This document shows positions 14,501-62,731 of a stretch of 64,000 nucleotides of DNA, in pieces. Position 1 is the stretch's first letter, and each line of letters opens with the position of its first letter. Position numbers and translations under genes: made by a program. Under the pieces are notes generated by a model. It saw nothing but the letters and a program-made list of their open reading frames with translations. It was not told the DNA's origin and did not search any database. The stretch lies in the NCBI GenBank assembly GCA_026936335.1, contig JAPMXV010000059.1, forward strand, positions 1 to 64,000, written 5' to 3'. Source of the DNA: Mantamonas sphyraenae STR306. Taxonomy: Eukaryota; Protista; CRuMs.

Positions 14501-17500
14501 GAGTGCAAGGGTTGTGACGGCAAGCTCTACCCCAAGGGCAACAAGAAGGTCAAGGACAACTGCGGCGTGTGCGGCGGCGACGATTCATCGTGCCGCGGCT
14601 GCGACGGCAAGCTCTACCCCAAGGGCGGCAAGGTCGTCAAGGACAACTGTGGCGTGTGCGGCGGCGACAACACAGCATGCAAAGGCTGCGACGGCAAGCT
14701 GTACCCCAACGGCAACAAGAAGGTCAAGGACAACTGTGGCGTGTGCGGCGGCGACAACACAGCCTGCAAAGGCTGCGACGGCAAGCTCTACCCCAAGGGC
14801 GGCAAGGCCGTCGTCGACAAGTGCGGCGTCTGTGCAGGCGACGACTCATCCTGCAAGGGGTGTGACGGCAAACTGTACCCCAAGGGCAACAAGAAGGTCA
14901 AGGACGACTGCGGCGTCTGCGGCGGCGACAACAGCGCTTGCCGCGGCTGCGACGGCAAGCTCTATCCCAAGGGCGGCAAGGTTGTCAAGGACAAGTGCGG
15001 CGTGTGCGGTGGCAACGATACCGCTTGCGTCGGCTGCGATGGCAAGCTCTACCCCAACGACGAGCCCAAGGGCCACGACAAGTGCGGCGTCTGCGGCGGC
15101 GACAACAGCAAGTGCACGGGCTGCGACGGCAAGATCGTCCCTCCTCCGGGCAAGCCCGCCGCCAAGGACAACTGCGGCGTATGTGGCGGCGACGACTCGT
15201 CCTGCCGTGGCTGCGATGGCAAGCTCTACCCCAAGGGTGGCAAGGTTGTAAAGGATGACTGTGGCGTCTGCGGCGGTGACAACAGCGCTTGCCGCGGCTG
15301 CGACGGCAAGCTCTACCCCAAGGGCAACAAGCTGGTCAAGGACCAGTGTGGTGTGTGCGGCGGCAACAACTCGGCATGTACAGGCTGTGACGGCAAGGTC
15401 GTGCCCCCTCCGGGCAAGCCCACGCAGAAGGACGACTGTGGCGTGTGCGGCGGCGACAACACCGTCTGCAAGGGCTGCGACGGCAAGCTCTACCCCAACG
15501 GCGGCAAGCCCGAGAAGGACAACTGCGGCGTGTGCGGCGGCGACAACACCGCCTGCCGTGGCTGCGATGGCAAGCTGTACCCGCAGGGCAAACCGCTTGC
15601 CAAGGACCAGTGTGGCGTCTGTGGCGGCAACAACACAGCGTGCCGCGGCTGCGACGGTAAGCTCTACCCCAACGGCAAGCCCCTGGGCAAGGATGCATGT
15701 GGCGTCTGCGGTGGCGATGACTCGTCCTGCCGCGGCTGCGACGGCAAACTCTACCCCAACGGCGGCAAGAAGGTCAAGGACCAGTGTGGCGTGTGTGCCG
15801 GGGACAACTCGGCATGCACAGGCTGCGACGGCAAGGTCGTACCCCCTCCGGGCAAACCCACTCAGAAGGATAACTGCGGCGTCTGCGGCGGCGATGACTC
15901 GTCCTGCAAGGGCTGCGACGGTAAGCTGTACCCGAAGGGTACTCCCAAGGCGGTGGACAAGTGTGGCGTGTGTGGCGGCGACGATTCATCGTGCCGCGGC
16001 TGCGACGGCAAACTCTACCCCAAGGGCAACAAGAAGAGCCTGGACAATTGCGGCGTCTGCGGCGGCGACGACTCGTCCTGCCGTGGCTGCGACGGCAAAC
16101 TGTACCCCAAGGGCGGCAAGGCCGTCAAGGACCAGTGTGGCGTGTGTGGCGGCGACAACAGCAAGTGCAAGGGCTGCGACGGCGTGCCCAACTCGGGCAA
16201 GTCGTTTGACGCCTGCGGCGTGTGTGGCGGCGACGGATCCAAGTGCGCCGGCTGCGACGGCGTGGCCAAGAGCGGCAAGAAGTACGACCCGTGTGGCGTG
16301 TGCGGTGGCAACGGCAAGAGCTGCGCAGGTTGTGACGGCGTGCCCAACTCGGGCAAGAAGGTCGACCCGTGCGGCGTGTGTGGAGGAGACGGCAAGAGCT
16401 GTGCAGGCTGCGACGGCGTGCCAAAGTCGAACAAGACCAAGGACGCATGCGGCGTGTGTGGCGGCAACGGCAAGAGCTGCGCAGGCTGCGACGGCGTGCC
16501 CAACTCGGGCAAGGACGTCGATGCTTGCGGCGTGTGCGGCGGCAACGGCAAGAGCTGTGCCGGTTGCGACGGCAAGCCGAAATCGGGCTTGAAACTGGAC
16601 GCGTGTGGAGTGTGTGGTGGTGACGGCAGCACCTGCAAGGGTTGCGACGGCAAGTTCTATCCCAAGGGAGGCAAGAAGGAGGTGGACCGCTGCGGTGTGT
16701 GCGACGGCAACGGCAAGTCGTGCGTCGGATGCGATGGCGCAGCCGTGCCTCCTCCGGGCAAGCCCAAGAAGAAGGACAACTGTGGTGTGTGCGGCGGCGA
16801 CGATTCGTCGTGCCGCGGCTGCGACGGCAAGTTGTATCCCCATGGCCACAGGAAGACAGTGGACAAGTGCGGCGTGTGTGGCGGTGACGACTCGTCGTGC
16901 CGCGGATGCGACGGCAACCTGTATGTCAACAGCACCAAGCTGGCAAAGGACGCGTGCGGCGTTTGCGGTGGCAACAACGCAACCTGCACCGGTTGCGACG
17001 GCAAGGTGGTGCCTCCTCCGGGCAAACCCGCACAGGAGGACAAGTGCGGCGTGTGCAAGGGAGACTCGTCCACGTGCCGTGGCTGCGATGGCAAACTGTA
17101 CCCGGACGGCAACAAGAAGGTCAAGGACGCGTGCGGCGTGTGCGGAGGCAACAACGCAACCTGCACGGGTTGCGACGGCAAGCTGTATCTCACGGGCAAC
17201 AAACCCGTGGTGGACAAGTGCGGCGTGTGTGGCGGCAACAACACAGCGTGTGCAGGTTGCGACGGCGTGCCCAACAGTGGCATCAAGCCAGACGGCTGCG
17301 GCGTGTGCGGAGGCAACGGCAAGACGTGCGTCGGCTGCGACGGACGCTTTGGCTCCAACGCTGTCTACGACGGCTGCGGCGTGTGCGGAGGCAACAACTC
17401 GACTTGCTTCGGCTGCGACGGCACCCCGCACGGGAACAAGACGTACGACGCCTGCGGCGTGTGCGGAGGCAACAACTCGACCTGCATCGGCTGCGACGGC

Positions 17501-17854
17501 ATTGTCAACAGCGGCAAGGTGTACGATCTGTGTGGCGTTTGCAACGGCAACAACACAGCCTGCCTTGGCTGCGACGGCGTGCCCAACTCGGGCAAGACCT
17601 ATGACTTTATGGGCGTGTGCTCAAACAGCTCCAACGCAACAGCCACAGCCGTGGTGGGCGGCCTTGCTGCAGGCGCTGCCGGTGGTGTGGGTGTCATGAG
17701 CTACTTCCTCAAGGGTGTCATGGACGGAGCCAGCCAGGTGAGCCAAGTCACCGACATCGGCAGCAACGTCTTTGATGGCGGAGGACTCAACAACCCTCTC
17801 TACGAGGCCAGTGGCACGACCAACCCGTTGTACAATGCGCCTGGCGAGATATAG
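8563..17854 (+). CDS. ~3000-aa type I membrane protein: signal peptide, CUB-like domain, roughly 90 DxCGVCGGDxSxCxGCDG repeats, GxxxG transmembrane helix, cytoplasmic tail with two NPLY motifs
   Basis: Exon 8563-8677 encodes MMACHIRHTLLILGCLLAALVLG, then intron 8678-8872 (GTACGT..GCTGAC..CAG). CUB-like signature NCWLISP..FGFEAKY. The repeats continue across three ORFs joined by 1-nt deletions at ~11570 and ~13563. C-terminus AVVGGLAAGAAGGVGVMSYFL..NNPLYEASGTTNPLYNAPGEI*. Confidence 0.88.
12777..15367 (+). repeat. Near-perfect 1296-bp tandem duplication inside the Cys-repeat array
   Basis: Identical side ORFs are offset by 1295/1296 (13022 vs 14317; 13642 vs 14938). The unique peptides GVHHSGKKY and PNDEPKGH each occur twice. 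Confidence 0.92.
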
Positions 17855-39668: not shown

Positions 39669-42600
39669 CTACGCAAACCGCACCTCCTCAAACACCACCT
39701 TTGGGAGCCCATCCACACCCTTCCCATCTCCCCCGTCCTCATCGTCGTCGTCGTCCACTGCCCAGTTGAAATCCTTCAGTCCCTTCTCCACAATGCTTGC
39801 GCGTCGCGAGCCAGCGCGGCTGGGCTGGGTGCTGCTCCTCCTGCTTCCCCTGCCACTTGTTCGGGCACTGCTCGTTGCCGTCCCCTCTGCACTGCCTGCC
39901 TCGCCCGTCTCACTGGAGATGGTGGGGATGTCCATCATCATGCTCGTGTCCATGTTGCCATGCACCTCTGCACCATCCCCATCCTCCTGCTCCTCATGCT
40001 CCTCCTGCTCCTCCGTGTCATCCTGCGCCACACTGTCCAGCCCTTCCAACACCACCTCGTCGCTGTCCATCACAGCCAAACTCGTGTGCATGCGCAGCCC
40101 ACGCATCAGACCAGCACTCATCGTCACTCCCAGTTGCGTGGCATGTGCCGCAAGGTCACCCACCACACGCGAACACTCACTCAGCAGGATCTCGTCATGC
40201 GCACGCACAAACTTGCCCACACGGAACTCACGCAACACATTGGCACGCAGCATCATGCCCAGCTTCTGTCGCCACACACTGCGTGTCTTCACGTACGCAT
40301 TCATGTCCTCGCCCGCAGACACCCTTTCCATCCACTCTCCAAGCATAAAGTGTCCGTGTGCACTCGGTGACACGGGCGGCCGTGCCAACTTGCTTCCACC
40401 CATGTTCTTCTCCTTGGCCATGCCCACCCCTTGTCCCGCCTTGCCTTTGCCTGCTGCCGTTGCCCTCGACGATGACGACGACGACGATCCACCGCCGTCC
40501 AGTGCATCCTCATCCTCCTCGTGCACCACAAACAGCTTCATCCTGTCCCTGTTTGCCGCTGTGGCACTCTGCAGGCCTCCGTCTGAATCCTCGTCGTCCT
40601 CTGCCAATTGCTCCTCCTCCCATTCCTCCCCAGCTCGCTTCACCAACGCCTCCAGGTCCGCACTCATGCACAACACATCCATCTGTGCAGCTGCAAGTGC
40701 ACGCGGGTCCTTTGGCACACTCACACGGCCCAGCACCTGCCCACTCTTGCCGTCTGTGACCATCTGTCGCGCAGCACCAATGTCTGTGCACACCACAGGC
40801 ACACCACACATCGCTGCCTGCCCAATGTTCGACGACACGCCACCCGACAACGAGCATTCCAGCACACACCACGCAAACGGCACCACTTCGGCGCCTGCAG
40901 GTCCCTGCAGACTCACCGTGTGTGCCAATCCCAGCGTCTGGATCAGCTGGTGGCACACAGACGCGTACCGTACGTCCTCCACCACGCCACGCACAATCAA
41001 TCGGTACTCGCTCAGACCAAACTCGTGCACAATCACACTCGCCGCACGGATGGCCCCCACAATGTCGTTCACGGGACTGATCGCCGCCATCATCATGCAC
41101 GTCGGCCGCTTGCTCTCCAGGTACCGTCGCACGCCTACCCGTTCTGCATTCACACCCGTTGGCACCACGTGGCTCTTGCGTTCCATCATGCTGTGCAACT
41201 TGGCGTCGTCGTGGGCGCCCACGAGCATCTGCACCCATTCTTCCATCGATCCCGACGCCGCAGGAACAACCGCATCCGCTTCGTACAGCACAGCCTTGCA
41301 CACTGCCAGCTGCAGACCCAGGATCGACTTGCGCACAAAGCGCGAGTATCCCTGCAGTTCGTTCAGATACAACACCTTCTGACGCAGATCCAGATCCTGT
41401 TCCCACACCACCAGCCTCGACCCAAACACTCGTTTCGTCACCACTCCCACCAGTGCTTGCATGTCGTGGTTCGACGCATGCACCACCGTCACACGGCGCG
41501 GTTTGGCACACAGCGGCGTCAGCAGGCGCACGTACACAGCCAACAGCACGCGTGCATCCTGCTCCGTCATGTTGGCTGTCATGGCCACGTCTTGCTCGTC
41601 CCACGCGTGGAACCACGCCTTGATGCACGCGTCGCTGTTCCATGTCGCCTCCCATCCATAGAACTGGAAGTACGTAAACATGTCCAGCATCAGCTTGCAC
41701 ACTTGCTCCATCTCCTCTCTGCTCGACGGCTCACGTGTCACAAAGCTCACCAGCTCGCGTACGAGTGGCACAAAGTAGCGCATCACCACCGTCTCCGATG
41801 TTTTGGATCGCATCATCGCCAGGTGGCCCATTGGCACGTCTGCCTGCTCGTTCTGGTACACGTGTTCAGGCGTGTGCGACCACACCTTTTGCACACTCAA
41901 CGCTTGACTGATGCGTGCCACACCACCCATTTGCACGTGCATCTGCATCTCTGCCTCCGTCATGCGCACCTGATTCATCCACACCATTCCCTTTGTCTGG
42001 CCCATCACCTCACTTCTGCTCACCAACACATCCTGTGCCGCACTCAACCATCCCACACGGTCCAGACCCAACACGCTCAGTTCGCGCGTGCCCTTGTGGC
42101 CCATCCTCTGACGCTGTCGTGCCACAGAGTTGCTCCCAGGCGTCGTCATCCGATACAAGTCCGCATACTCATGCCACAGCGGACATGACACGCCCTCTGA
42201 CATCCGTGCGTCGATTGCACACACAATTTCTGCCTCGTGTGCATCCAAATACGCACGTGCCTCCTCCACGTGGCCCCTGTCACGTGCTTTCCAGTACGCC
42301 TCCAGCAACGGCTCCCGTCGCAACACAAACTCATCCAGTTCCCGCACATGGAACGCACCCAACTCTGCCATTTCCGACTGCCACATTAGTGCAAGCAGCG
42401 ATCGCGAACGTTTCGTGTTCACATACGTGCTGCACAGGTGCCGTTCACGCCCGGCCTTTTTCACCACAAACTGCGACCGCACACTGTTGTCCAATCCACC
42501 CAGGTCGTAGTCAAGCAGGGTGCTCTCTGCCTCCGTGTGAATCAGTCCGTACGGATCCGCTGCAATCATGAACGGCGCCTCGTGTGTCATAAACACATCA

Positions 42601-45600
42601 CGCGTCTCTCGCGATCCCAGCTGCTCCATGTCCGACTTGTCCCACAGCCCTGCGTTCAACAACCCTGCCTTGACACTTGTCTTGCGTCGTCCGCCCGGTC
42701 GGTCTCCGCTCAGACTCGATCGCGGCTCAGCTTGCGCTCCTCCGGAAAACACGCTTCCTCGGCCCAGGTTGCTACGTGCCACCCCGCTCGGCTTGCGACT
42801 CATCTGCACAGATGAACGTCCACTCATGCGTCGTCCCAGACTGAATGACAACCGCTTGCCGTCTGTCGACACGCGTCGTTTCTCTTCCGAAGCCCCGTGT
42901 GATTCACGTGTCGATGTGCGATCAAACCGCACCATTTGCTTCAGCTCCTCCGGATCAATGTCCGCAGCCTCTTCGCCATCCACGCCTGCGGATGCCACAG
43001 TGGCCTCTGCTGCCGCAATGCCACTTTCGTCTGCCATGCGCACCATACTTCCGGGCCCTTCCCCAGCAGACAGATCGTCCACCATACCACTGCGCAGCGT
43101 GTGTACCATCTGTCGCTGATGCAACACCGTCTCGCCCAACTCCCAACACAGACTGCGCATCTCCTGCTGCGATGCAACCACCATGCGCACCGTCTGCTTG
43201 TCCAGAGTCTCCACACACACTGTGCGTTCCGAAAACACCTTGCCTGCGTCCTGCTCCGCGTGCACACTCTTCACATGGCTCAGATCCACCTGCACGTCGG
43301 CCACCCTCGCCACCGTCTCTTCCATCACACGCGCACTCGCCATCATCTCTTCCGTCAGCTCATACCACTCCACACGCCCGCGCAGCACACGCATCCACAT
43401 GCGACGTCGTGTCCCTCCCTGTTGCAGCACCTCCACCACCGTCTCCAACACAACCTCCTCCCGCGTCTTCACATCCACCTCCATCGTCTCCGTCGTCAAG
43501 TCGTCTTCGCCCTCACCATACGTCAGTACACTTCGCCACGTCTTGCTTCCACTCGAGTACAACACAGACGCCGCAGCGCGTGTTGCTTGCATCTCAAAGC
43601 CCACTGCACGCCAGTAGAACACAGTCATCTGCCACTGTTCGTCTCGGCACTCGTACGTCACCTCCAGTGGGCGGCTCTCGTCCAGCGGACGTGCAGAGTC
43701 GTGTCGATAGTACGCATCCACACGCACAGGGTAACCCGCACGGTCCATGCTGCTCACGTACAAACGCTTCGACAGCACACGTCCGCTGGCGTCGAACCAG
43801 CTTGTCTCCAATGGCACCTCCTCCTTGGGCTCTTCTGCAAGGTCGCCTGCGTACACTTTGGCCACATGGCCCGACCCACCTGCACGCCGTGAAAAGAACA
43901 TGGTTGTCGTGCGTCCAACGTCCATGCGCACGAGCTGTTGCAACTCCCGCTGCCCGTGTGCGTTCTTGTACGTCACCACCTCGCATGCACTTGATCGTCC
44001 GGGCTCCTCTTCGTGCACTCCCACGTACACATGGCCCACCCACGTCTCGCTGTGTGCACGCCCACTGACAAACACTGTCTTGGGCTGCGGCTGCACATAC
44101 GCAAACACCACCTGCGGCACATCGTCCGCACCCAACACCAATGTGCGCGACAGGTTGTGACGCACAAAGTCCAGCAGCAGATTGGCCTCCATGTACGGAT
44201 GCACCAACACCTTGGGCATCACCCATCCACTCAACGCAACCGCCATCGGATACACCCACTGCGAACCCTTGGCCAACTTCTTTGCCAGCCAACCCATGCC
44301 TCCCACGCTCGGTTCGTTCGTCACCGCCCAGTGGTGCTCTGCCACATAGTCACTCATCGCATTGGTGCTCATAAACATGTCCCGCACAAGCGACTCTACC
44401 TGCTGCCACGCTCCAGCACGCATCACAGAAGAAACCACTCCTGCCAACATGCTCTCGTCCACTCCATCGCCTCCGTCGCCCATTTGCAGCAGTTGTACCA
44501 GTTTGCGCCCATGCGCACGCGATTCGTCCGTCGATTTCAGCCACTCGGGCACCATCGCACTCCCGTGGCGTTTCCTCGCGTTCCTCGTGTCCATCTCTTG
44601 CATGACACCGTCCTGTTCACCCTCTTTCGCATCTTTCTTCTCCCCGTCCTGGCCACTCCAGTCGCTTTCGTTCACACTGTCTGTCGGTGACGAAAACGCC
44701 GTGTGTGCATCGAGCTGGCCCAAGCCGCCGTCACCACCTCGTCCAATGCCACCTTCCACCATCGCAGAAGCCATCTGCGCCACGGCATCCGTGTTCATGC
44801 GCTCCACCAGCGCGTCGCGGATGCCCAAAGCCACTTGGTTGCTGAGAACCACGCGTGCCAGCTCCTGCGACACCACCCACGCCTGCGACTGTTGGGTGCG
44901 CTCCTTGCGCAGCTGCGACAGACGAACCGACCTGTGTGCGTGTGCTTGCAGACAAGCCATCACATCATCCGCACGCTCATCAATCACGTCGCACAATGCA
45001 CCCACCGTCACCATGTCTGCACGCAGATCTGGTGTCTGCAGCATCAACACAGCCACAAGCACCTTGCGCAGACGCAGCGGAAACTCTGCCCAATGCTGCT
45101 CGACGTCGAAACCCAGCAGGGAGTGACGCGCTATCACAGACGGTGTTGCTTCCAGCATCGCCATACGCGTCTCTGTGGGCATCATGTCCAACTGCTTCTC
45201 GATGCGCGACGGCAGTCCGTACACCTCCAACGATCCCGTCTGTTCGCTCTCCTCCTCGTCGCCACTCTCGTCCATCGCATGCAGCACAACTTCACCGTAC
45301 TCTTCCAGTGCCCCATCGCTGGTCACCGTCAGATCCATCCCGTCGCCCGTGACATTCACCAACAGCTCGCTCAGCACGGCGTTGTGATGCGACATGTGCA
45401 TCACGTTCTCCGCATACTCGTGCAACAGCACCTCCACAATCACGCGCACCTGTTCCTTGTCATTGCGTGCCTGCCATGGCACCGCCACAAACACATCCAA
45501 CACCATCTCGTCTCCGGATTGGCGCAGGTGCGACACTCCCATGTATCCCACCATCGATTGCTGCCCACACACCCCCTCCCCGCCTGCCTCGTCGCCCACA

Positions 45601-48600
45601 TACAATGCCTGCATGTGATCCTGTGCCACCAGCAGTACGTTGATCTCCCCATCTGTCCAGTCGCGTGCCAATCCCTGCAACAACGCCTTGCCCTCAGGGA
45701 AAGCGGCACTCAACACCTGGTTGTGCTTGCGCTCTTCCATCACCATCGACGCTTCACGTACCAATTGCAACACGCGGTCGTCCACTTGCGGGTCCAGCAG
45801 TTCCATCAGTGGCTCCTGTGTACGCCCCAGTGCATACAAATGCTGCAACACACGCAATTTGCGCGCCTCATTCTCCTCCTGGCCCACAAAGCGCATGGTG
45901 CTCACACTCATCGATGACTTGAGTCGCTGTGCGTGGGTTTCAGACAACACCCGGTCCTCATGCACATTCACACGCTTGCCATTGAACCCCATGATGACCA
46001 CATAGAGAGCAAACAGGATGCTGTTCAGCATGCCGGCCAGATTCAGCACTGCCTGCTGCCTCCACACCTGGAAAGCAACGCCAGCAAGCACATACGACAC
46101 TACCAGAGACAGAAGCAGCGCACGCGTCGCATTCAGCCTCTCCAGGCCCAGGAACCAAACTGTAAAAGTGGCCCACAGCAACAGCGTATGCCCAATCAAA
46201 TTCTCGGCCAGGTAGAGCATCAGTGTACCACGCACCACGCCCACCCATGCGCGTGCAACACCCACAAAGCACACCACCATTGCCACAAAGCACACCAGGG
46301 CAAAGCGGCGCATAAGACGACGATACTCCATCTGTTTCAGCACCTGCCGCTCGTCCAGACTCTGCAAAAGTGGACCACGTCGACTTGCAGACGACTCTTG
46401 TGCCAGCAGACTCCTGAGTTCTCCGATCCCAGCGTCCCCATCGCCATTCTCTCGTCGCATCGCAGCGTCTTCCAATTCTGCCTCCAGCGCATTCCTCTTG
46501 TCCGCGGGGGCAAACCCACCCGTGGCCAGTAGATCCGGCATCGTGTTGCCCTTGCTCTGCCTGCGCTTCTTCTCCAACGCCTCTGCCTCTGCCTGCTCGC
46601 GTGCAGCACGCTCGCGACGCCGGGCTGCTGGACGAGGGTCGGTGAACGACGATGAGACGCTGATGAGACCCACAAACGGGGCTGTGCAGACCATGAGGAC
46701 GTAAAGCAAACCCCACACCTGGGGCACCAGCAGCGAGTTCAGGCTGGCCACAGAGTCGACAAAGTAGGTGCGTACGGTGTAGAGATGAGTCCACTCCAGG
46801 AGGGGCCCCAGGAACACAGCCACCATGAACAGGGAAGAGAACACGGCGTGTTCAAACTCCCATTCCCACATGATGCCTCCTCGGATGTCCGGTTCCATCC
46901 TCAGCTTGGCTTGGAACATGTCCGAGGCCTCTTGCAGCACCCATTCCCATTCCACGCTCACGGGTGCAGGCACCGTGCGGTTGTACACGGTGCAGTACCA
47001 CCTCACAAGCTTGCTTTCGTGTTCGTGGTTCAATGCGCGTCGCATCACTACCTGCTCAGGCGAGCTGTTTGGCAGACGCAACGCACGCAGTTGAATCGAC
47101 AGCCAGCCAGCCTCCAATTGCTGTTGCACCGCTGCCGAGAAGCGACTGCGTGCACGCATCAGTTCCATGGCATGTTCCCTCTGTGCCATCACGTCGTCTT
47201 GTGCAAACGAAGGCACAATCTCCTGGTTCTGGTGATGGTACCACTCCAGGATCTCCACCTGTTCGGTGAGACGGATGGAAAAGTACCACTCCATGCGTCG
47301 GCGTCCCAGCAGCAGAAAGGCATGCCAGCTCCATGCGGCACACAGAACAAGGCCACCAAAGTACAGCGGAAGCACGGCGGAACGAAGCGTGGCTGCATCC
47401 AGCCACACGGCCACAATGCGAGGTGCGGCCAGCAGCAGCAAAGACAAGCCATTCATCCACCAGGCACCCGAGTACACATAATCGCGCGTGTGCAGTGCCG
47501 TGGTGGCCGTGGTGCACACAGTCACAAACGTCAACACAGGCATGTGCAACAGCAGCACCAGCGCAGGCCACAGTCCATCCACGCCAAGCACAATGACAGT
47601 CACCAGCGCCACCACAATGGATGCCCCTGTCCCCAACATGGCAGCAGACAACAGGCGTTGCGTGGCCACCACGTCGCTCAGACGGAAGCTAAACGTACGC
47701 AGCAATGCGGTGCACATTTTGGCCACCGAAGTGGCTGGAGCCGCTGCCAAAATGGTGCTCAGGGTCAGGCTCACCTGCATGGACCACAGGATCATGGGTG
47801 GCATGGCACTGTGCATCAGCACGCCCTCGCCCGTGCCAAGCATCACAATCAGATCCAACAACAAAGGCAGATGCAGCAAGGCACCCAACGAGAAGCGAGC
47901 TGCACGCTCCTGCTCCTCGCGGAAGTGTTCCTGCGATTCGTACAGGCTGCTCTCGTCGTAGCAGTCCTCTTCGCCGCGGGCATCCTCTTTGCGAGCCTCG
48001 TGTGCCACCTGTTTGTACACGGTGGCACTCAGCACACCCAAGGGTTTGCCAAATGCGTGCTGCACCGTGTGCTGGTTCCAGCCCAGCGACTCGAGTGCCA
48101 CACTCACCGAAAACGGCGACGGCAATGGAAACGGGTACATGTCACGCACCTGGTTCTTCATCAGTCGCACGGCTGTGTTTTGACTGGCCATCGACAGCAA
48201 TCGACGCACCAGCTCCGTCACCATGGGCCGTTCCAGCTCATACTCCATGCGTTGGCTCATCAGCTTCAAGAACGACTCCAGGAAATTCAGCGATGCATCC
48301 GACCACATCGCATGCGTCACTGCGTGGTACAACAGACCGCTCAATCGCGATCCTCCCACTTCGCTCTTGTTGCGCATGGGCGTCACTTCAAGCGACGTGC
48401 GATGCTGGTCGCGTTGCGGGTTCTTCACCAGCAGGGTGGCAGCCAGGTGCTGTACCTGTTCCGCTGTACGTCCCACTTCGTCCAATGTTCCCTCCTGCTG
48501 CACCTCGGACAACTCCAGGCGCATACGCTGCATCACAGCCGGCGTTTGTTGCACCAGCACTGCCAGCTCCATGTTGGATGCGTGCTGCAATTGGTGCACA

Positions 48601-51600
48601 ATGCGATCTGACAACGCGTCCCACACATCGCCCTCGTACATCTGTGTCCTCTGCGAAACAAGGTGCTCCAGGTACACACAGTGGCTGTGTGTGAATCCCC
48701 GCCAGTCCATGTACGCATGCACCACGGCTTCTGCAATGTTTGGATGATCGCGTGCCACATACACGTCCAACCACTCCTCGTTGCTGCTCTGCCCTCCTCC
48801 CTCGCTGATGCTGTAGTACTTGTGTCCCGCCGCTGTTGTCAGCGTACGAGGGTCACAATGCCAAACCTGCACGACAAACCGCTCCCGCAGCTGATCGGCG
48901 CGTGTGCCATACACATTGTCCCGTGAGTTGTACCCACGCGGTTCCTGCAACTGGCCCATCACACCCTCTTCGCGAACCTCAAGCAGCTCTTGCGCCAGGT
49001 CCGCCAGTGCTGCGCCCACCTCACCCGTGCTCAGTTCACCCACGGGTGACATCGTCTTCACCGTTGGGTGCACCGTTGCCAATTCCCGGGCATGTGCCAC
49101 CGCATCCAACATTGCCCGAAATTCGCGCCGGTGTTCAAATCGCACCTCGTTGCGCTCTGCATCGTCCTTGAAAACCTCAAACATGCGCGGCTGGTTCAGA
49201 TTGCTCAGCACGCCCTTGTCACGCAGCAAGCGCAGACGTGACATCACTTCGGCTCGCTCACGCAGTGTGCAATTGATGCCAATCTCGTGCTGGTCGCCAC
49301 TCACATTGTCTGGACCCTCGGTGGATCCCGACAGTGGTTCCCATCCCGCAGTGCCACCCACTCGTTCCCCCGTCACCTCACTGCAAGCGGCCAACATCTC
49401 TGACACCAGTGCCGGTGCGTCGACTTCGTCAAAGTCGATGGAGCTCTCGTTGGGCCTGTAGTTCAGCACCGATCGGTCGCTCTTGCTCTCAAACACACTG
49501 TACGCCACTGGTTTGTGCAGCTGCGCCAACAGGCCTGGTGCATACCCTTGCACGGGCCCGTACTGGCGTGTCAGGTGCCGATCCAGCCGCGACAGATCCT
49601 CGCGTGAGGGTACCAGAAAGTGGCCTTCGGTGTCCTCTTCCATGTCGTCCAGACGGGTTGGCGCCGGGCTGGCACGCAAGGAAACATGTGCAGATGCGGT
49701 CGAGTAAACCGACATGGGAGTGGCACGTCCGTCCAGCTGGCGACGCCATTTGGGCACCGGTCCACCGCCGTCGTCCAGTTGCTGCAAGGCATCACGCAGC
49801 TTCTGTGTGCGTTCCTCGTGCTCCTTGTCCATGAGAGCCACTGTGTCTTCCACGGGAGTCACGGGCACATCTTCGCACAAGGCCATGAACCGTTGTACCT
49901 CGGGGCGTGCCATCAGCCCCACGGGTCCTGCGGGGCGCAGATTGGTGCCGTACAAGTTTAGGTTGCTCATGGTCGGGTCGACGTTGACCCACGCTCGAAA
50001 GTCGTTGAAGTTGGCCCAACTCATGGACAGGAAGCGTTCGATGAGCTCCGGGTGCACGTGTCGATAGTCGGCCACGGTTTCCACCGCAAACACGTGAAAG
50101 TCTGCTCTGTTCTGTCCCTCGATGCCCAGGCGATCAATGTACTGGCGCAGTTCGGTGCGTTGGGCATTGGGCAGCTTGCGCATGTGGCCGTTGTAACGCA
50201 TGGTGCAGTTGTGCAGCACCACCCCATTGATCACTGCCCGCAGTTTGTCAAACACCTCTTCGCCGTTCTCCATCACAAACCACCGCTTGCCTGCGTCCGA
50301 GTACGAATGGCGCTGTGTGATCTCGGTCAGGCTGTCCACCGCATCCTCCACGCCCACTCGCTCCACAAACTCGTCCACGTTGACAAACACAATGCCGTCG
50401 TACAGATCCCGCTGCGAGTGGTGGTCTCGCTGGGCCATCAGGTCGTCCACCACTGAATCCAGCGTGTGCATCGACAGTCCCATCCCTTCGCTCAGCCGAC
50501 CCGTCGAATCCTCCATGCCCAGGAAGGCGGTGTTGTCCACCGACCTGCCCGAGCTCATCAGCCGCTCCATTTCCTCATCCTCCACCGTGAACGAATCCAC
50601 ACTGAACACAGAACTGTCCGATTCCCGTCGCATGTCCTTTCGCTTGCCCCTGCGGTCCAGATTGTCCAGCATGGCCAGCGAGCTCGTCGATTCCAACGGC
50701 TGCGGGCTGAGTCGTCCCGAATACTTGGATCCGTGTTCGCTCAGTCGTGTCTGTAGCAACGATCCTTGGCCGCCCAGCACACTCACCACTGCGTCCGAAT
50801 CCTCACGCTCTTCCAACAGAGCCAGTAGGCCCTGCCGCTTCGTGGATGCGTTCTTGCGCATTGTGGCTCGACGCAGACTCATCTTTGACTCGCCCTCCTT
50901 GCCACCACTGCCACCACTGCCACTTGCCACACTGTGGGTGGGTGACAGCACGGACGGTTCGGGGCTACGGAACATGCCCACTTCGTGGCTTGTTGTGGAA
51001 CTCAGCCTGCTCATCTCCAGCGACTCGTACTCGTCGTTGCCAGATGTGCTTCCACGTCGCTGCTTGCGCTTGCCCTGCAGCATGGCACCCAGGCCCTTGG
51101 CTTCCTCGCTGAGGTGACTGGAATCGTGGGTGCCACTCAGGCGGATGTGCTTCAGGTCGACAATGGCCAACAGGTGCTTCTTGGCATAGCGACGGTGTTT
51201 CACAGACATGCCCTTTTGCATGCTGGGGTCCACTGCAAGCATGTCGTACCTGCCCAACAGGTCTTTCTCGTCGGTGGTGAGCGTGTCATGGAACCTGCCG
51301 CGGTACAGGGCAAAGGAGCGCACGTCAAAGGTCTCTGCACGCATGGCACTGAGACCACGTGGCTGGGCCACAATGTCCAAGAGGCCACTTTCCACCTTGC
51401 TGCTGTCCACCACGGTGTACAGGGAACCCTGGCGCAAACGCAGGAAGCGAACGATGAACCACAGGATGCCTGCAGCCACCATGGCACCCACCACATACTG
51501 TGGGTTGTCCAGCAGCACCTGGTACCAGGGGGGAGGAGGCACACCGGGGGGAGGCACAGGCTCACAACGCGGGCCACGGTGACCCACGCGACAAACACAG

Positions 51601-54600
51601 GTGCCACGCAGACAAAAGCCACCCTCGCCACAGGACCAAGGGCATCCGTAGGGCACAACGGTAAAGTTGAATGGCGAGCCGGGGATGGACACGCCGTCCA
51701 GAGTGACGTCTGCGTAAAAGGTGCCACGCACATCCCATGCAGTCAACACATCCACTGTGTACTCACTGTCATTGTGACGCGGTCCCACCAGCTGCAACTT
51801 GCCATCCAAAGCAGTCTGGGTGGCTTCGGTGACGGCGCGTGCGGCTGTGCGAACGGCTGCAGTTGGGGCTTCCGGAAGCAGGCGGATGGCAAAGTTGAGA
51901 CCGGGCACGTTGCGGTAACCCTGGCCTGAAGGATGGACCACATAGATGTGCAACTGTTGCAAGACACCCGCACGGATGGTGGCACGTCCTTCGGTGCCCA
52001 CCTCCATGTGATCCCGACGAACAGGCAGGTATTCCACAGGCACATCCACAGGCACCACACGTTTGCGCTGAACCTGGTCCATGGTCACCCACGCCGTCAC
52101 GTCAGGACCGTAGAACTCACGTCGGATGCTGGGCGATGGAAGCACAGCCACTCCTGTGATGGGCACCACACATTCGCGGGTGCCCTGCACCTCCACCTGC
52201 ACATGCGTCAACAGCGCCGTCCCATTGAAGGGTTCGTACAGAAGCTCCACTGAGGGCCGGCATGAGTCCAGGGCCATGCGAGCAAGGAACTTTTCCGTCA
52301 TGTGTTGCTGCTTCTCGCACTTGAGGGGAAATGTGGTGAACTGCATCAGTTCGTCCACAATGGCCTCCACCCACAGGGAGAGCAGACTGGCACGGCGTCC
52401 CTCCCATGGGAACACCACCAGGTTGGCTTGATGGAACATGTATCCGTCGTGGTCGAACCACAGGAGATTCGGAGCCAGCTGGTTGCGTTCCCTGGTCAGC
52501 AGACCATCCATTCCCTGGCGTCCCAGTTGCGCCTCGTAGCGGAAGTTGTACTGGTCCAGGTTCTCCTTGGGTGTGCCTGCGTTGTAGTAGATTTCTGTCG
52601 GGTAGCGAGGGATGATGAGGGTGCCATCGGCGCCGTTGAATTGCTGGGTTGTGTACAGTGCATGGTGGCGGTTTGTGGCACGCAGCTCATTGCGTGTGTT
52701 GTCTCCCACCGCATAGATGATGCCATGTTGTTGCAATCCACGCAAAGCATCGCCGTTGAGCAGACCGGAAATCACCGGTGTTACGATGCATCGTTCGCTC
52801 CACGTCCAGCATCGCTCCCTCAGTTCCGGGTCTGTGTCCAAGTCGGCCCACCGTGTGCCACATCCCAGACCGTCATAGAACACGTCTGCATGCACCTGGT
52901 TCTTGTAGATCTCACACGCGGCATCCTCCAACCGCGTCGGCTTGCCCTCGCAGTCGGTGCATCCCGTGCACAGAGTCGGGTTCTGATCCGCCACTGTCAG
53001 TGACAAGTGGGTGTAGGTGTGTGTCAACCAGTAAAAGTTCTCGCGCAGGGCACGGGACACACGAAACAGCTCGTCGGCTTCCCACTCGGTCTTGTTCTTG
53101 CCAGTGCCCAGACCATTGAATGGCAGCTCAATGCGGTAGGTGGAGTTTGCGGGCATCACACGCGTGCGCATGTGTTCCTGCCACTCCAGATGCCAGCGCA
53201 TGTCATCGCCTGTGGCCCTGCGTGTAGGCGCCGTCTGTCCAGGCAGTGAAAAGATGCCCGTGGACAGGAAGTGGTCGTCCATCTGTGTGATCAAGTACTG
53301 CCTGCGCACACCAACAAAGCGCCCACCGCTGCTGGCAAAGTTCCACAGAAGTCCCATCAACACCGGTCCACTCTTGTCGAAAATGGCTGGCAGCGCATGC
53401 ATGTGCAGGGTCTCTCCGCCCAGGTCGTCGGTGTGCAACGTCACCGCGGGACGGTCGCCCCAGTTGCGATACGTCATCAGCACACGCACGCTGGATGGGT
53501 CGGTCACACGGCCCACAAAGTAGTAGCTTGTGGGCAGAGGCACGGTGAGGTTGGCCTTGTAGCCTGCACCCATCACTCGATGGCCCTCTTCGGTCAATCC
53601 CAACCACGTGGCATTGTTCTGACCGCCTGCAGGAAACCCGGGGTCGTTCTCCATGCCCATGTCCGCCGAGGGTTGCGACACCACACTCACGGTGGGAATG
53701 TTCCACTTGGCACAGTATGTGCGCAGGGCATCACGCAAACCAGGTGTCATGCCAGCCACAAACTCGCCGGTGGGATCGGCATAGCCCAGCGTCCATGAGG
53801 TCATCATCACCGCAGAGTACAACGGTGCCCCGTCGTCAGAACGGGTCAGATTAAACGTGGTTGCGTCGGGCAACGGCACGCCTGCCGCTGTGGCCATGCA
53901 TCGCTTCTCGTACGGCACTGCCAGCGACATCAGCAACCGCTCAATGATCTCCAGACCCGTGTCACTTGCGGCACCCGTGGCACACAGCACCAGCACCTTC
54001 TGTACACGTGGAGGGTGCACCACACGCACCACAGTTTCGTTGCGCACACGCACTGTGAATGGCGATCCTGCCACCGCCTGTCCGTCCATGCGCACGTCCA
54101 AGGTGACGTTTGTGCGATCGTGCGTGCGCACAAACGAGTAGCGATACACGCCGCCCTGCACAGAGTCCGGGGTCAGGTCCAACCCATCCGGTTGGAGCTG
54201 CACACGCAGACGTGGCGACAGTGTGTTGACGTCACGTGTCCCTGGGCCCAGCGGCGAGCCCACAAACAGACTGAAATTGGCGGAAAGGCCCACCACCGCC
54301 TCGGTCAGGCCCGACCCGTTGACAAACACATCGGCGGGTGTCACGGGCAACACACTCTCGTTGACGTTGACTGGAAAGAAGAGGGACTGTGCAGGCTTTG
54401 CGTGCAGCCACGAGGTGTGGTCGGGACCGTACTCTTCCACGTAGGATTGTGCCGAGGGCAACACACGCACACCGGTGACGGGCACCCAACAGTCTCCCGA
54501 TGCGTTGACACGCACACCCATGAGCACGCGGGTCAGGTTGGGGTGGAAGCCAATCTCTGCCGTGGCGTTGCAGGCATCCAGGGCCATGCGACGCAGGTAC

Positions 54601-56398
54601 ATGTCACCCAACACATCCTGCTTGACCGACAGCACCGGAAGCTGCAGGTAGCGAAGGTAGGTGTCGACCACCGCGTCAATCCACAGAGTCAGCAAGGAGG
54701 CACGCGTGGTGTCGTGTGTGTGATTGGCCCGTGTGTAGTTGAACACCACCAGGTTGGCCTGGTGGAACATGTACGGATCATGTCGGAAGGCACCCAGAAT
54801 TTTGTTGAAGTTGCGTGCCTCTCGATCCACAATGTCGGCAATGGTGTCGTTGGCGTACTGCGGGTAGCGAAAGTGGTATTGGTCCTCGTTCTGCACGGGC
54901 AGCGCACAGTCAAAGTAGATTTCTGTGGCGTAGCGTGGGATGATGAACAATCCATCCCATCCGTTGAATGCACGTGTGGTCCACAGGCCATGGTACAGGT
55001 TGGGCGGCACCAATTCGTCGCGGGTGTTGTCTCCAACTGCGTACACCAGACCACGGTCCGTCATGGCTCGAATGGCGTTTGCGTTGAGCAGACCCGAGAT
55101 GCGTGGTGTCACAATGCTCTTGGGCGACCAGGTGTGGCATTGGGGATACTCGGCGCCTGTGTTTGTGCCACAGGGGACTCCGAAAAAGGTGTCCGCCACA
55201 GCCTGGTTGCGTGCCACCTCACAGTACGCCTCCTCGTACCGAGTTGTCAGGTTGTAACATCCCACGGTGCACCCTGTGCAGAACGACTCGGTTTGGTCGT
55301 TGACTGTGAGACTGAGGTGGGAGTACGTGTGGGTGCTCCAGTAAAAGTCGTCGATCATCTCCTTGGACTTGAGGTAGAGCTTGTCGTTGCGTGTGGAAGT
55401 GATGCCAAAGCCATTGAAGGACAGTTCGATGGCAAAGTTGGACCCGGCAGGCAGGCGATGCTGGTTGAGGTGGCGTGTGTAGTTGCGATGCCACTCCATG
55501 TCCTCGGGCGAGCAGCGGTATCGCTCTGTGCCTCGGTCCCGCAACGAGGGTTGCCACACGTTGGTAAAGAGGAAGTAGTCGTCCATGTGTACGTCGAGGA
55601 GGACGCGACGGTAGCCACGGAAGGGAAGTTCGTGGTGGGTCAGGAACTGGAACCACAGGGTGTTGATGGACGCCATGTCGTCTGTGAACGTGTTGAGGTC
55701 AATGAAGCTGTGGAATTGAAGGGATCCTGACACGTTGAGTTGGGTCACAGCCACGTTGACTTCGTCGGGCAGGCCCTGGTACCGGAGCAAAGGCGTGTTT
55801 GTCTCCGGACGCGTGTTGTTGACTTTGTAGTGGAAGGGCTTGTCAAACACCAGAGTGGTGTTACATTGAGCACATCTCGAGTGTATACGCGTGCGTTGGC
55901 AGCATCAAAGGTGAGGTTGAAGGCTGCCTCGCCGGAAAAGATGGAGCGCATGCCAAAGCTCTCCAGGTGGAACGGGTTGGAAGCGAGCACGACACGACGG
56001 GCGCCTGTGGCCCGTTCGAACTGTGCGAGGGTATTGATCATGGCATTGGAGTACAGGTCGGCGTACTGGCCATTGGGACGCTGGTAGCTGAGACGGGGAG
56101 TGGTCATGACAATGGCCTCGTACTTGGGCCTGCCCTGCGGCGTATAGAGTGCAGGGAGGGTCACGGGGGTCACAATGGTCTTGTTGGCGACGTAATGGAA
56201 GTGATCGTAGGGCAGTGCAAGGCCATCGATGATGGCAAGCGCTGCCGTGAGCGAAGGGTCCTGGTCTTCGTCGTTTGTGGCGCTGAGTAGCAGCCACTGA
56301 GTGGGTTCATACGCCATGGTGTCTGGAGACACCTGCGTACCCTCTGTCAGTGCCAAAGCCAGCACCAAGGTGGCTAGAAGAAGCCACAGTGAGCGCAT
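39669..56398 (-). CDS. Giant (~5,580 aa) fusion: signal peptide, 2x Agd3-like CE18 deacetylase, 2x filamin/Ig, EGF-like, TM, degenerate GH114-like barrel, multi-TM region, PH-like domain, GT4 (Gtb3/PelF-like) domain
   Basis: Start MRSLWLLLATLVLALALTEG at 56398, joined to the 5393-aa ORF by a 1-nt deletion at ~55862. Agd3-type motifs occur twice (MDDxFL, HTY(S/T)H, SGLLN, GDNTR, PRY, YMFHQANL). The C-terminal GT-B motifs include GVPVVCTDIGA. Confidence 0.88.
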
Positions 56399-58860: not shown

Positions 58861-58988
58861 GCAGGACCAAACGCAGGGGGGGGAGGGGAGGGGAGGTGGG
58901 AAACACAACATGGATGGAGCAACAGAGACAATGAATGAATGGATCGTTACTCGTCATGACACCCACCCACCCAACAAAAACGACAAAA

Positions 58989-61900
58989 ATGGAGAAGCGG
59001 CGAGTGTGGGCTGCGGCAGCGTTGCTTGCTGTGGCGTCCTTGGCCGTGTTGACGGTGTTGTATGGCACGGGATCAGTGTTGGAGATGGACAGTGCAGGGG
59101 AGATGGAGAGCAGGAAGGGCCCCGATGGCGATGGAAGGCAAGAGATGATGGGCAACGGGGCAGGTGGGGAGGGGGTGAAGGAAGGCAAAACGCAGGTTCA
59201 ACGGCCGAGGAGCCAGTTCACAGGTGTATCCACGACGATGTGGTGGCCAAACGCATGCTGGGTGCACCTGTGTATGTGCACGAGAACAAGCACATGAGCA
59301 CACAGGAGTGGGAAGAGTGGCGTAGCAGCAAGGCAGGCATGGAGGCACGTGCAAACAAACGCGCGCCGGAGCCCATCCGCATCCGCTTCGATACGTCGCT
59401 GTTGGACAACGATCCCAACCGCACATGCACGACAGCAGGACAGAACTACAAGATTGGCAGTCCAGCAGGGCCTGGATTGTCACCCACATGTGGAGGCAGC
59501 ACCACAAGCGATTGCTGGGGGTTGTGCACTGCAGACGACGTGTTGACGCCTGCCAAACGCACCCAATTCCTAAACACCACCCTGAGTGATGCCACCACAT
59601 GGTTGAGTGGGGCATTGCGTGTGGAACGTGTGCCAGGCACCCATCTGACCCTGGCCAATGGCAACTGTGGGTCCCCCGGGTCGTTTGCCATCCCGTCCTC
59701 ACGCGTCTCACCAGGCACAACCGACGCAGACCTGCTCATCTTCCTGACCGCCCGCCCTGCAGTGGGATCGACAGTGGCGTATGCGTCTGATTGCAACCAG
59801 TTTGACACCCATGGTCGTCCTGTGGTGGGACACTTCAACATCAATCCCAACCGGGTGGTGGTGTCCCCCACAGCACTTGTGCGACACCAGCAAAAGGCTG
59901 TGGCCATCCATGAGATCACCCACATTCTGGGGTTTGTCAATGGCAGGTACAACAACTTCCGCGACGGATCAGGCAATCTGATTCCCCAGAGCAGCGTGGT
60001 GGTCAGCAGCACACACAACAGTCACACCGTGTACAAGATCATCAGCAGCAATGCACGTGCATGGGCACGCACACACATCGACTGTGCCACCCTGGATGGC
60101 GTCCAGTTGGAAGACCAGGGAGGCGCAGGCACCGCAAACTCCCACTGGGAACAACGTCTGTACTACAACGACTACATGAGTGGGTCCATCTTCAGCAACC
60201 CGGTGCTGTCTGGTCTCACCCTCTCCCTCCTCCAGGACATGGGCTTCTACTACCCGGATTTCACGTACGAAGGCATCCAAACGCTGGCCTGGGGACGCAA
60301 GCAGGGCTGCGACTGGGCCACCCAACGCTGTGACAGCACGTCGTCCTGGTCGACTGCCCTGGGATACCGATGCACATTGGCAGACAGTGGCGTGCAGGGC
60401 TGCTCTGTGGATCGGGAGAGCAAGGCCACGTGCAGCATTGTCACGTACCCTCCTTCCACCATCCCATCCTACTTCCAGTACTTTGCCAACGCCCAATTGG
60501 GAGGTGGCCAACAGTTTGCAGACTTTTGTCCCCACCAGACGGCGTATGCAAGTGGCAACTGCCGGGAACCCACCAATCGCAACTCGCAGTCCTACCTGTA
60601 TGGCGAGGACTTTTGTGCCCATTGTCGATGCTACTCTTCGTCGCTGTTGGATGTGCGTGCCGTGTTTAGCACGTCTGCACGTCCGCGATGCCATGAAGAA
60701 CGATGCCTGGCCAGCGACGAGTTGCAGGTGGGAGTCAACGGGGTGTGGTACACATGTCCCCAGGCGGGGGGAGCCCTGTCTGTGTTTGGTTTCACAGGCA
60801 GTGTGACATGTCCCACGGCAGCACAGGCCTGTGGGGACTTTGCCATCCCTGCGTCGGTGAGTCCCACCCTGCCTGCGGTGACCTCTGTGTTTCCGGCCAA
60901 GGGACCCAGCAATGGATTGGAAGTGGTGACACTGGCCGGGGTGCGATTCCACACGGGAATGAGTGTGGACATTGGTGGGGTGCCATGCACGAATCTCAAC
61001 GTCGAGTCGAGCACGCAGGCCACATGCATCACGGGAGCCAAGACGGGCCTGACCACAGCCACCAACGTGGACGTGGTGGTGACACACAACGCCGCGTTGA
61101 ACTACCAGACAGTGCGACGCAATGCGTACCAGTACGACCCGACCTTTCCCACGTTTACGCGCATTTTCCCCACGGGAGGCCCCACGGCAGGAGGCACCCC
61201 GGTGACACTGTTTGGCACGGCCTTCTCCGAGGTGGGCAGCACATACGTGACACTGGCAGGACTGCAGTGCAGCAACACCACCGTGTTGGACTCGACACGC
61301 ATCCGTTGCTTCACCCCAGACACAAACACCACAGCCATCACCAATGCCGACCTTGTCATCACCGATGCCACAGGTCGCATCCTGCAGAGCAACGGTGCGT
61401 ACACGTTTGACAACGCATGGCCACGCATCACAGCAGTCAGTCCTGCTGTGGGACCGCCGCAAGGACGAGGGGTGGTGACATTGACCGGGGTCGGACTGCG
61501 TGGCGATGGACCTGTCACTGCCCAGGTGGGTGACTTTGCATGTACCAACCCACAGTGGCTGCCTGGTGGCAGTCAGGTGCGATGCAACACCCCGCCGGCG
61601 GTGAACCTGGCTTCGTTGACACACACCCACGCCTACGTGGAAGATGCCAGTGGACGTGCAGCAGCCGGACCCTTTGTGTACACGTACGACCCAGCGTGGG
61701 TGGACTTTGACAATCTGCAGCCACCCACGGGCCCGTCGTTGCCGCAGACGTACTGGACGGTGACACTGACAGGACGCAACTTTGCCACGGGGCCCGAGGC
61801 AGCCAATGTGAGTGTATGGGTGGGTGGACAGGCGTGTCGCAACACACAGGTGTTGTCATCGACACAGTTGACATGTCTGCCTGCACCTGTGAACATCACC

Positions 61901-62731
61901 AGTCCGTTGGCCACGGATGTACGTTACACGGATGCCAACCGCAGTGTGGAATACACACGTGCAGAGATGTTTCTGTATGACCACGAATGGCCTGTGGTGG
62001 ACAGGATATTCCCCACGGGTGGCTCTGTGGCAGGGGAGCAGTACATTGAGTTGAGTGGCAGCAACTTTATCACCACACGTGTGCCCTCCATCAACGTGGA
62101 TGGTCGTGCCTGCCTCTCCCCCACTGTCATTTCATCCACACTGGTGTCCTGTGTGACACCTGCTCGGAGCAGTGCCCTCAACTCGGATGCCCAGGTCGAC
62201 GTCACTCTCCTTGATCCTGCCGGTCGCCTGGCTGTGGCCAACAATGCCTTTCGCTACCAGGCCACCTGGCCCCAGTTTGTCTCCATTTCCCCGGCCTCTG
62301 TGGTCAACCAGGAGACTGCCACCATCACCATCACCGGCACAAACTTTACCTTTTTCATCAACAACAACGCCGCCACGGCGGCGAGCATCAAGGTGCTCCT
62401 GGGCGACACGGAGGCCACGTCGGTCAATGCCACTAGTGACACCACCGTTGTGGCCACGGTGGCCCCCAAGCTGGCTGCTCTCAGTGCAGACGCAAAGGTC
62501 GACGTGACCATTGTGGACTCGCAGGATCGCGCCGTAAAGGTGCCCGGCGGCTTTACCATTTCTGTGCCACCGACGCCGCCGCCGCCTGTGGAGCCACTGC
62601 TGATCTTCTTTGCAGCTGTGCCCGTGGCCATGGCCGTGCTCTTTGTCTTTCTCAACCGCGTGTTTGGCGTCCTCCGAGGCGAGGAGAAGATTCCCGTGAT
62701 TGTCATGGTGCGCCAGAGCACGCGTTCATGA
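58989..62731 (+). CDS. Leishmanolysin/GP63-like M8 metallopeptidase with six IPT/TIG domains and a C-terminal TM helix
   Basis: Signal/anchor MEKRRVWAAAALLAV (frameshift in the G run at ~59170), HRCIHD propeptide, HEITH zinc motif, LEDQGGAGTANSHWEQR, DYM Met-turn, and six P.(I/V/F)...P..G...G...VTLTG.(N)F repeats. Confidence 0.92.

Follow-up and report, generated by a model that had tools for sequence, protein, structure and literature searches.

We analysed a stretch of 64,000 nucleotides (hereafter the window; GC content ~59%) at the start of contig JAPMXV010000059.1 of Mantamonas sphyraenae STR306, a marine surface-gliding flagellate of the CRuMs supergroup. The minus strand carries one very long gene, the predicted product of which places two tandem Agd3-type deacetylase modules outside the membrane and continues, after a single transmembrane (TM) helix, into a nearly complete body of the Gtb3 family, ending in a family 4 glycosyltransferase (GT4) domain that looks catalytically dead. 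Agd3 and Gtb3 are partners in the galactosaminogalactan (GAG) pathway of Aspergillus fumigatus. The features of the gene, in the order of its translation, are as follows.

39669..56398, minus strand: whole gene (5,576 aa, with X at the assembly slip)
56339..56398, minus strand: signal peptide-like hydrophobic N-terminus (read from the sequence)
55860..55862, no strand: base missing from the assembly (frame slip), present as an insertion in runs X1, X2 and X3
54400..56302, minus strand: Agd3 module 1, made up of CBM87, a CE18 deacetylase and a C-terminal beta domain (Pfam; match to structure 6NWZ)
54051..54359, minus strand: filamin-type Ig domain 1 (Pfam E 2.4e-7)
52080..54005, minus strand: Agd3 module 2 (match to 6NWZ; catalytic residues)
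51660..52037, minus strand: filamin-type Ig domain 2, weak (Pfam E 0.016)
51561..51644, minus strand: EGF-like unit (Pfam EGF_Teneurin E 3e-5)
51441..51497, minus strand: single TM helix, with basic residues after it (hydropathy; position of the A. fumigatus Gtb3 N-terminal helix)
49915..51341, minus strand: barrel like GH114/GH166/GH191 (Ega3, PelA hydrolase), predicted to be cytosolic (AlphaFold2 (AF2) model; Foldseek)
45880..47927, minus strand: membrane domain of MOP/MATE fold, two lobes and a cytosolic insert (AF2; hhalign)
42590..45780, minus strand: region collinear with Gtb3, with lineage-specific inserts (family profile; alignment)
40613..42110, minus strand: PelF-like GT4 domain, active site degenerate (family alignment)
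39672..40100, minus strand: acidic low-complexity C-terminal tail (sequence)

Gene structure and assembly

The main frame is stop-free from 55904 to 39672 on the minus strand (5,411 codons) and stays open throughout, also below 50800. The ATG at 56398 and the signal peptide lie in a different frame, which stops at 55745. Compared with the assembly, contigs of each of three independent sequencing runs (X1, X2 and X3) carry one extra base at 55860/55862, and the run contigs show no splice joint between 50800 and 56500, the stretch with which they were compared. Because all three runs carry the extra base and no joint is present, the frame slip near 55,860 is a one-base assembly error; an intron at this position was rejected on the same grounds, and no alternative genetic code is needed to read the gene. 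The intronless gene of ~16.7 kb described in the initial annotation was thus borne out in its continuity, while its start codon and signal peptide turned out to stand in the other frame of the assembled sequence. With an X placed at the break, the product is a type I membrane protein of 5,576 aa (~622 kDa). All tools searched the two frames separately, and the joined protein was used only in our scripts.

Could the gene be an artefact, either two genes wrongly joined or a pseudogene in decay? The frame slip in the assembly and the fact that no run is recorded as RNA would fit such an explanation. However, the slip is absent from the three runs, and single contigs (X1, 50800-56213; X2, 50800-52981) cross the Agd3–TM–Gtb3 junction, so that the junction is not mis-joined, a danger which the initial annotation had itself raised. 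Decay is further opposed by the 5,411 stop-free codons and by the variant positions within 50.8-56.4 kb, where 29 synonymous changes stand against 4 non-synonymous ones; this bias means that the ectodomain is under purifying selection. We therefore regard an artefact or a decaying gene as hardly credible.

The longest contig of run X1, which is listed as 'DNA?', is only 20 kb (compared with 169-278 kb), and the run leaves the 5' end of the gene uncovered; together with the study's run list, this suggests that X1 is perhaps an RNA run. A fourth run, X4, gave three short low-depth contigs within 51043-55405 of the window that are 99%+ identical to the gene; this run is otherwise nearly without the gene, and the contigs are probably cross-contamination within the study.

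The extracellular deacetylase modules

Over the whole protein, Pfam matched Agd3_CE (E 2e-121), CBM87 (E 2e-6), Filamin (E 2.5e-8) and GT1/GT4 (E 7e-8). Both N-terminal modules also matched the structure of A. fumigatus Agd3 (6NWZ; E 9e-31 and 9e-34), in agreement with the two CE18 modules recognised in the initial annotation. Five of the six motifs that it had listed for each module were recovered as written and where it had placed them, and the first has a wider spacing, RRxxxxxx(H/Q)MDD(Y/H)FL. The equivalents of D377 and D378 (CM1, DD), H510 and H514 (CM2, HxxxH), R613 (CM3) and M666 and H668 (CM4, MxH) are present in both modules, and each of these seven residues is essential in the A. 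fumigatus enzyme (PMC7229062). Both modules are thus predicted to be working deacetylases with intact active sites. CBM87 was matched by Pfam in module 1 (E 2e-6); module 2 is covered from position 17 by the Agd3 alignment profile, which it helped to build, and aligns with homologs that bear CBM87. The two modules are 42% identical and sisters in a FastTree tree (Shimodaira–Hasegawa support 94), which points to their origin by tandem duplication.

The modules are followed, as had been proposed, by filamin-like and EGF-like units and the TM helix, all recovered here, the second filamin unit at a weak score. Of the N-glycosylation sequons, 25 lie before the TM helix, a density of 1.5 per 100 aa as against 0.3 after it, which is consistent with the N-terminal part being extracellular. 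The topology claimed earlier, extracellular deacetylases tethered to a Gtb3 module, holds up. A profile search of the assembled contigs (78 contigs, 25,061,354 bases) found no Agd3 copy in the genome outside these two modules.

The Gtb3 half

With the C-terminal 667 residues as the query, HMMER returned 745 proteins, the best of which form a family of 2,600-4,400 aa. The A. fumigatus member (2,893 aa) adjoins genes for Spherulin4, GH114 and Agd3 proteins (sph3, ega3 and agd3), which identifies it as Gtb3. A hidden Markov model of the family, built from 40 proteins without the query, aligned near end to end with main-frame residues 1521-5295 (iE 6e-184, 4e-28 and 1e-107). When homologs of the entire Gtb3 half were sought by a word-based search, none came up, a false blank in view of the 745 HMMER hits. 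A hydrophobic helix of A. fumigatus Gtb3 (residues 32-50) occupies the place of the single TM helix here, which suggests that the ectodomain was joined on ahead of a pre-existing Gtb3 anchor.

A disordered Ser-rich insert (about 51130-50470) interrupts the barrel that follows the helix. The link of the barrel to known enzymes came from predicted folds, by Foldseek (GH191, E 3e-6; PelAh, E 3e-5; Ega3, E 2.5e-4) and by Z score (GH191, 15.0, with a root-mean-square deviation (rmsd) of 3.4 over 201 aligned residues; PelA hydrolase, 14.7; Ega3, 11.6); a sequence profile comparison with Ega3 gave no match. In the family alignment, only two residues of this region, both Gly, are at least 90% conserved; as neither is acidic, the barrel is probably non-catalytic.

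The membrane domain is multi-pass by hydropathy and was modelled by AF2 with a pLDDT of 80. Its top 14 structural matches are all MOP folds (best Z 18.2, rmsd 4.3, 398 aligned residues), the next row falling to Z 7.5, and MOP folds again came first in Foldseek (E 0.016 or weaker); sequence profiles gave no link to solved structures, the link coming from the folds. A profile of the membrane region found bacterial open reading frames (ORFs) at agd3 and pelF-like loci, with E down to 1e-15, in a set of 4,819 ORFs. Among the bacterial ORFs that neighbour pelF, 2 of 14 match Pfam PelG (PF16933; best E 1e-7), and the window protein itself has no direct match to PF16933. When the membrane-domain profile was aligned with the bacterial PelG-like profile, hhalign gave a probability of 98.5% (E 3.4e-15, 414 columns); by this comparison, the membrane domain is homologous to bacterial PelG-like proteins, and the analogy to Pel drawn in the initial annotation is stronger than was stated there. 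Since the best NCBIfam match of the GT4 domain is PelF (E 6e-15, below the cut-off), the make-up of Gtb3 resembles that of a PelG-like translocase fused to a PelF-like transferase. Between these domains, the region 42590-45780 yielded no usable fold or domain match in Pfam or ESM Atlas searches, and Pfam did not bear out a PH-like insert considered at 43.1-43.4 kb.

The near end-to-end family match and the AF2 model of a MOP fold thus substantiate the earlier identification of a multi-TM region and a C-terminal GT-B domain as Gtb3/PelF-like.

A degenerate glycosyltransferase and its intact paralogs

The GT4 domain keeps 62 of the 102 near-invariant columns of the family, compared with 97 and 100 in two paralogs encoded elsewhere in the genome. 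The residues at twelve key sites are HHDHRENSKDEE in the family as against NHEQRQTANDGQ in this protein, so that nine of the twelve are changed. The DH/RE motif, D-H..R-E, has become E-Q..R-Q (41402-41381), a Lys has become Asn (41069), and the EX7E motif has become G..Q (40844 and 40820). The lost Lys and EX7E Glu residues align with conserved GT4 residues of BshA; either Glu of EX7E is essential in the GT4 polymerase TviE (PMC8760489), and E405, R325 and K330 of PelF are its proposed donor-binding residues (PMC10185581). Because both EX7E Glu residues, the phosphate-binding Lys and the DH/RE motif are all changed, the GT4 domain looks catalytically dead. A loss of this kind was seen in no other of the 123 rows of the alignment, bacterial PelF included, and with so many changes, scattered across 600 bases, a sequencing error is, as read here, not the cause. 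The remaining Gtb3 body is relaxed too, less focally than GT4.

The paralogs with intact GT4 domains lie on other contigs, C1:99218-110314 (+) and C31:397724-408105 (+). Near 399,700 the C31 paralog breaks into two frames that overlap (693 and 3,024 aa). A partial GT4 match (E 6e-13) at C36:114791-115219 (+), in a frame of 1,365 aa, is probably another GT4.

Could the protein nevertheless be a self-contained synthase, exporter and deacetylase, with a GT4 domain working through a non-canonical site? It unites all the functional modules in a single chain of suitable topology, and its GT4 domain still has the GT-B core residues, together with an Arg, a His and an Asp. Such an activity would, however, have to survive the joint loss of both EX7E Glu residues, the Lys and the DH/RE motif, which no other homolog shows, and we consider it very improbable. 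Since the GT4 looks dead and two intact Gtb3 paralogs exist elsewhere, the 'single-polypeptide machine' of the initial annotation fails for synthesis: the conserved catalytic and nucleotide-sugar-binding residues that are missing here are kept in the two other copies.

Among further pathway partners, for which a genome search had been advised, a GalE gene on C31 scored above the family cut-off. It has a Cys at the gatekeeper position, which is a mark of UDP-GlcNAc/GalNAc use. The search thus yielded two intact gtb3 copies and GalE and, as weak negatives, neither sph3 nor a stand-alone ega3. A nucleotide-sugar epimerase-like domain also lies at C49:84300-85595 (-), in an open frame of 1,643 aa.

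Distribution and relatives

Intact Gtb3 homologs were found in Fabomonas tropica (an ancyromonad), Creolimax fragrantissima, 'Clim' (presumably Corallochytrium limacisporum), Cyanophora paradoxa (a glaucophyte), several chytrids and Bifiguratus, in a survey of the best 150 matches in which sampling is patchy and contamination or transfer between eukaryotes is possible. In an IQ-TREE analysis, eukaryotic Gtb3 formed one group apart from PelF (100/100), and Pezizomycotina Gtb3 was nested with Bifiguratus and a chytrid paralog (100/100). The C31 copy grouped with Fabomonas and environmental sequences, and the C1 copy with other sequences; the fusion protein sat on the longest end branch (1.74), with no firm placement. 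A single clade of the three Mantamonas copies was rejected (approximately unbiased test, p 0.018). The GAG cluster has been described from Pezizomycotina and Trichosporon, and its horizontal acquisition has been raised (PMC4817252). Homologs in CRuMs, an ancyromonad, unicellular holozoans, a glaucophyte and chytrids make an arrival only in Pezizomycotina doubtful for Gtb3 and suggest that it has an older eukaryotic history, beyond fungi. Two other homologs carry additional N-terminal units, LIM domains in P0059 and HEAT/transportin repeats in P0027, the latter possibly a merged gene model.

Agd3 also occurs in chytrids and bacteria (PMC7229062). The closest relatives of the Mantamonas modules were an environmental Agd3-EGF protein and proteins of Bdellovibrionota metagenome-assembled genomes (MAGs), and these, with the fungal clade, were set apart from most bacterial Agd3 in a FastTree tree that has long branches and gives no direction of transfer. 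The MAGs with the closest bacterial Agd3 are L108 (2799-8635, with two near-identical copies) and L109, with binning as deposited. The Agd3 proteins of L108, L109 and P0204 have weak Pfam matches (E ~1e-3) to the heparan sulfate N-deacetylase domain, a hint that CE18 and NDST deacetylases may be linked. Other probable protist proteins carry Agd3 as well: P0001 (L019; Agd3-VWD, 3,484 aa), L040/L041 (Agd3-EGF, sister to the Mantamonas modules) and L028, a secreted form with a Pro/Thr linker.

These relatives raise the question of whether the protein could be directed at prey or surfaces, its ectodomain binding and deacetylating the Pel- or GAG-like matrix of bacteria during grazing while the cytosolic pseudo-enzyme signals or drives uptake. 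The layout is receptor-like (signal peptide, Ig/EGF stalk and one TM helix), Agd3 stands on EGF or VWD proteins without Gtb3 in other probable protists, Bdellovibrionota are among the nearest relatives, and Mantamonas is a bacterivore (PMC10492846). This explanation leaves unaccounted for, however, why Agd3 should be fused to Gtb3, its pathway partner, and why two intact synthases exist with no other Agd3; we hold it to be quite unlikely.

Within a limited reach, no other Agd3–Gtb3 fusion was found among long proteins (only P0001, which is Agd3-VWD), long Gtb3-family matches and 160 Agd3 loci. Judged by titles and abstracts, the literature holds no report of such a fusion or of GAG genes in protists, in keeping with the earlier statement that the fusion is undescribed.

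A proposed pseudo-synthase subunit

We consider it somewhat probable that the fusion protein serves a GAG/Pel-type exopolysaccharide machine as a pseudo-synthase subunit, which would hold the deacetylases beside active Gtb3. GalE on C31 would supply UDP-GalNAc, and the C1 and C31 paralogs would build up an alpha-1,4-GalNAc-type chain within the cytosol, which they would export by way of their own PelG-like domains. The Gtb3 body that the fusion protein has retained would place it next to these paralogs in the membrane, and the protein's two CBM87-CE18 units, on the filamin/EGF stalk outside, would de-N-acetylate the emerging chain. The resulting cationic polymer may form an adhesive coat or trail for the surface-gliding cell.

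Alternatively, the protein could be a free-standing tethered deacetylase acting on the cell's own Gtb3-made polymer, with the dead Gtb3 body as an inherited anchor or sorting signal and no complex with the paralogs. The whole Gtb3 half is relaxed beyond the active site, the end branch is the longest in the tree, and in fungi Agd3 is secreted and acts untethered (PMC4817252). Yet a single TM helix would be enough as an anchor, whereas here a body of ~3,900 residues is kept with every domain open and confidently folded, and the barrel retains 10 of 10 conserved columns. This excess over what an anchor needs favours the pseudo-synthase subunit, and we regard the free-standing enzyme as unlikely.

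Several points weigh against the pseudo-synthase subunit. The GAG-type genes are not clustered, GalE lying 345 kb from the C31 paralog. Sph3 and a stand-alone Ega3/GH114 were not found in the genome; these are weak negatives, the control for Sph3 having also been silent. The columns of CBM87 Trp292 and Trp344 hold Phe/Tyr, in an alignment that is gapped near 344. The membrane domain keeps 19 of 35 conserved columns, compared with 26-27 in the paralogs, and the body may be drifting. The polymer is a prediction for Mantamonas, its identity being drawn from homology only, and the association with the C1 and C31 proteins and the oligomerisation of Gtb3 are likewise conjectural.

A broader version of the pseudo-synthase proposal, which we put forward tentatively and as less probable than an even chance, is that Gtb3 is an ancient eukaryotic fusion (PelA-hydrolase-like barrel, PelG-like MOP translocase and PelF-like GT4) working as an oligomer. 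The Mantamonas paralog would then be a dedicated dead subunit that brings deacetylases to the export site, the cationic polymer serving surface adhesion or gliding. If so, GAG/Pel-type synthesis would be older than fungi and would not stem from transfer into Pezizomycotina.

According to a 2023 review of GAG synthesis, Gtb3 had yet to be modelled, and the way it works and is coupled to Agd3 was among the open questions (PMC9860509). The locus joins the two proteins physically, and its natural dead paralog marks likely catalytic residues. The domain map, with a barrel, a PelG-like MOP domain and a PelF-like GT4, ties the fungal to the bacterial systems; Gtb3 and PelG are both named, once each, in two papers. 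For the surface chemistry of gliding flagellates, the protein is a candidate that can be put to the test.

Neighbouring genes

Neighbouring genes encode a gamma-tubulin complex protein, an RBR ligase, Alg6/8, a cyclin and a leishmanolysin, a thioesterase gene and the Alg6/8 gene adjoining the fusion gene. As the neighbouring genes are eukaryotic, a bacterial contaminant was rejected. The leishmanolysin (M8) domain, at 58910-62731 (+), is followed by six IPT/TIG domains. Long Cys-rich repeat frames at 8737-17854 (+) match ADAMTS_CR_3 and probably belong to a single large extracellular protein.

Comparison with known systems

Among the closest layouts on the extracellular side are those of P0001 and L040/L041, which likewise carry Agd3 on a large extracellular protein, with EGF after the module in L041; those proteins, however, have a single Agd3 module and no Gtb3 part. 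A. fumigatus Agd3 (PDB 6NWZ) shares the CBM, the catalytic and the C-terminal domain, each of the four catalytic motifs and the extracellular location. It is one secreted enzyme, whereas Mantamonas has two tandem copies on a membrane protein, at ~28-30% identity, with a Cys-rich insert after HxxxH and with Phe/Tyr aligned to the CBM Trp residues.

A. fumigatus Gtb3 and its eukaryotic family are collinear with the fusion protein over nearly the full length, from the N-terminal TM helix through the barrel and membrane domain to the C-terminal GT4. Here, however, the GT4 site is lost, an ectodomain of 1,630 aa is added, long low-complexity inserts are present, the gene does not lie in a cluster, and two intact paralogs exist elsewhere.

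The bacterial Pel system, with PelA and the inner-membrane complex of PelF and PelG, resembles the protein in its GT4, its PelG-like membrane domain and a barrel like the PelA hydrolase. In contrast to the separate Pel proteins, the parts here form one chain, in which counterparts of PelD and PelE were not identified, the deacetylase is of the CE18 and not the PelA type, and the glycosyltransferase appears dead. Bacteria also have runs of agd3, pelF-like and pelG-like genes (L175:7722-13715, L120, L176 and L124:4912-8572), the PelG-like members of which mostly escape Pfam PelG and match the Gtb3 membrane profile. Beside these systems, what is new in Mantamonas is the arrangement, the proposed division of labour with a pseudo-enzyme, and the lineage, each part being of a known kind.

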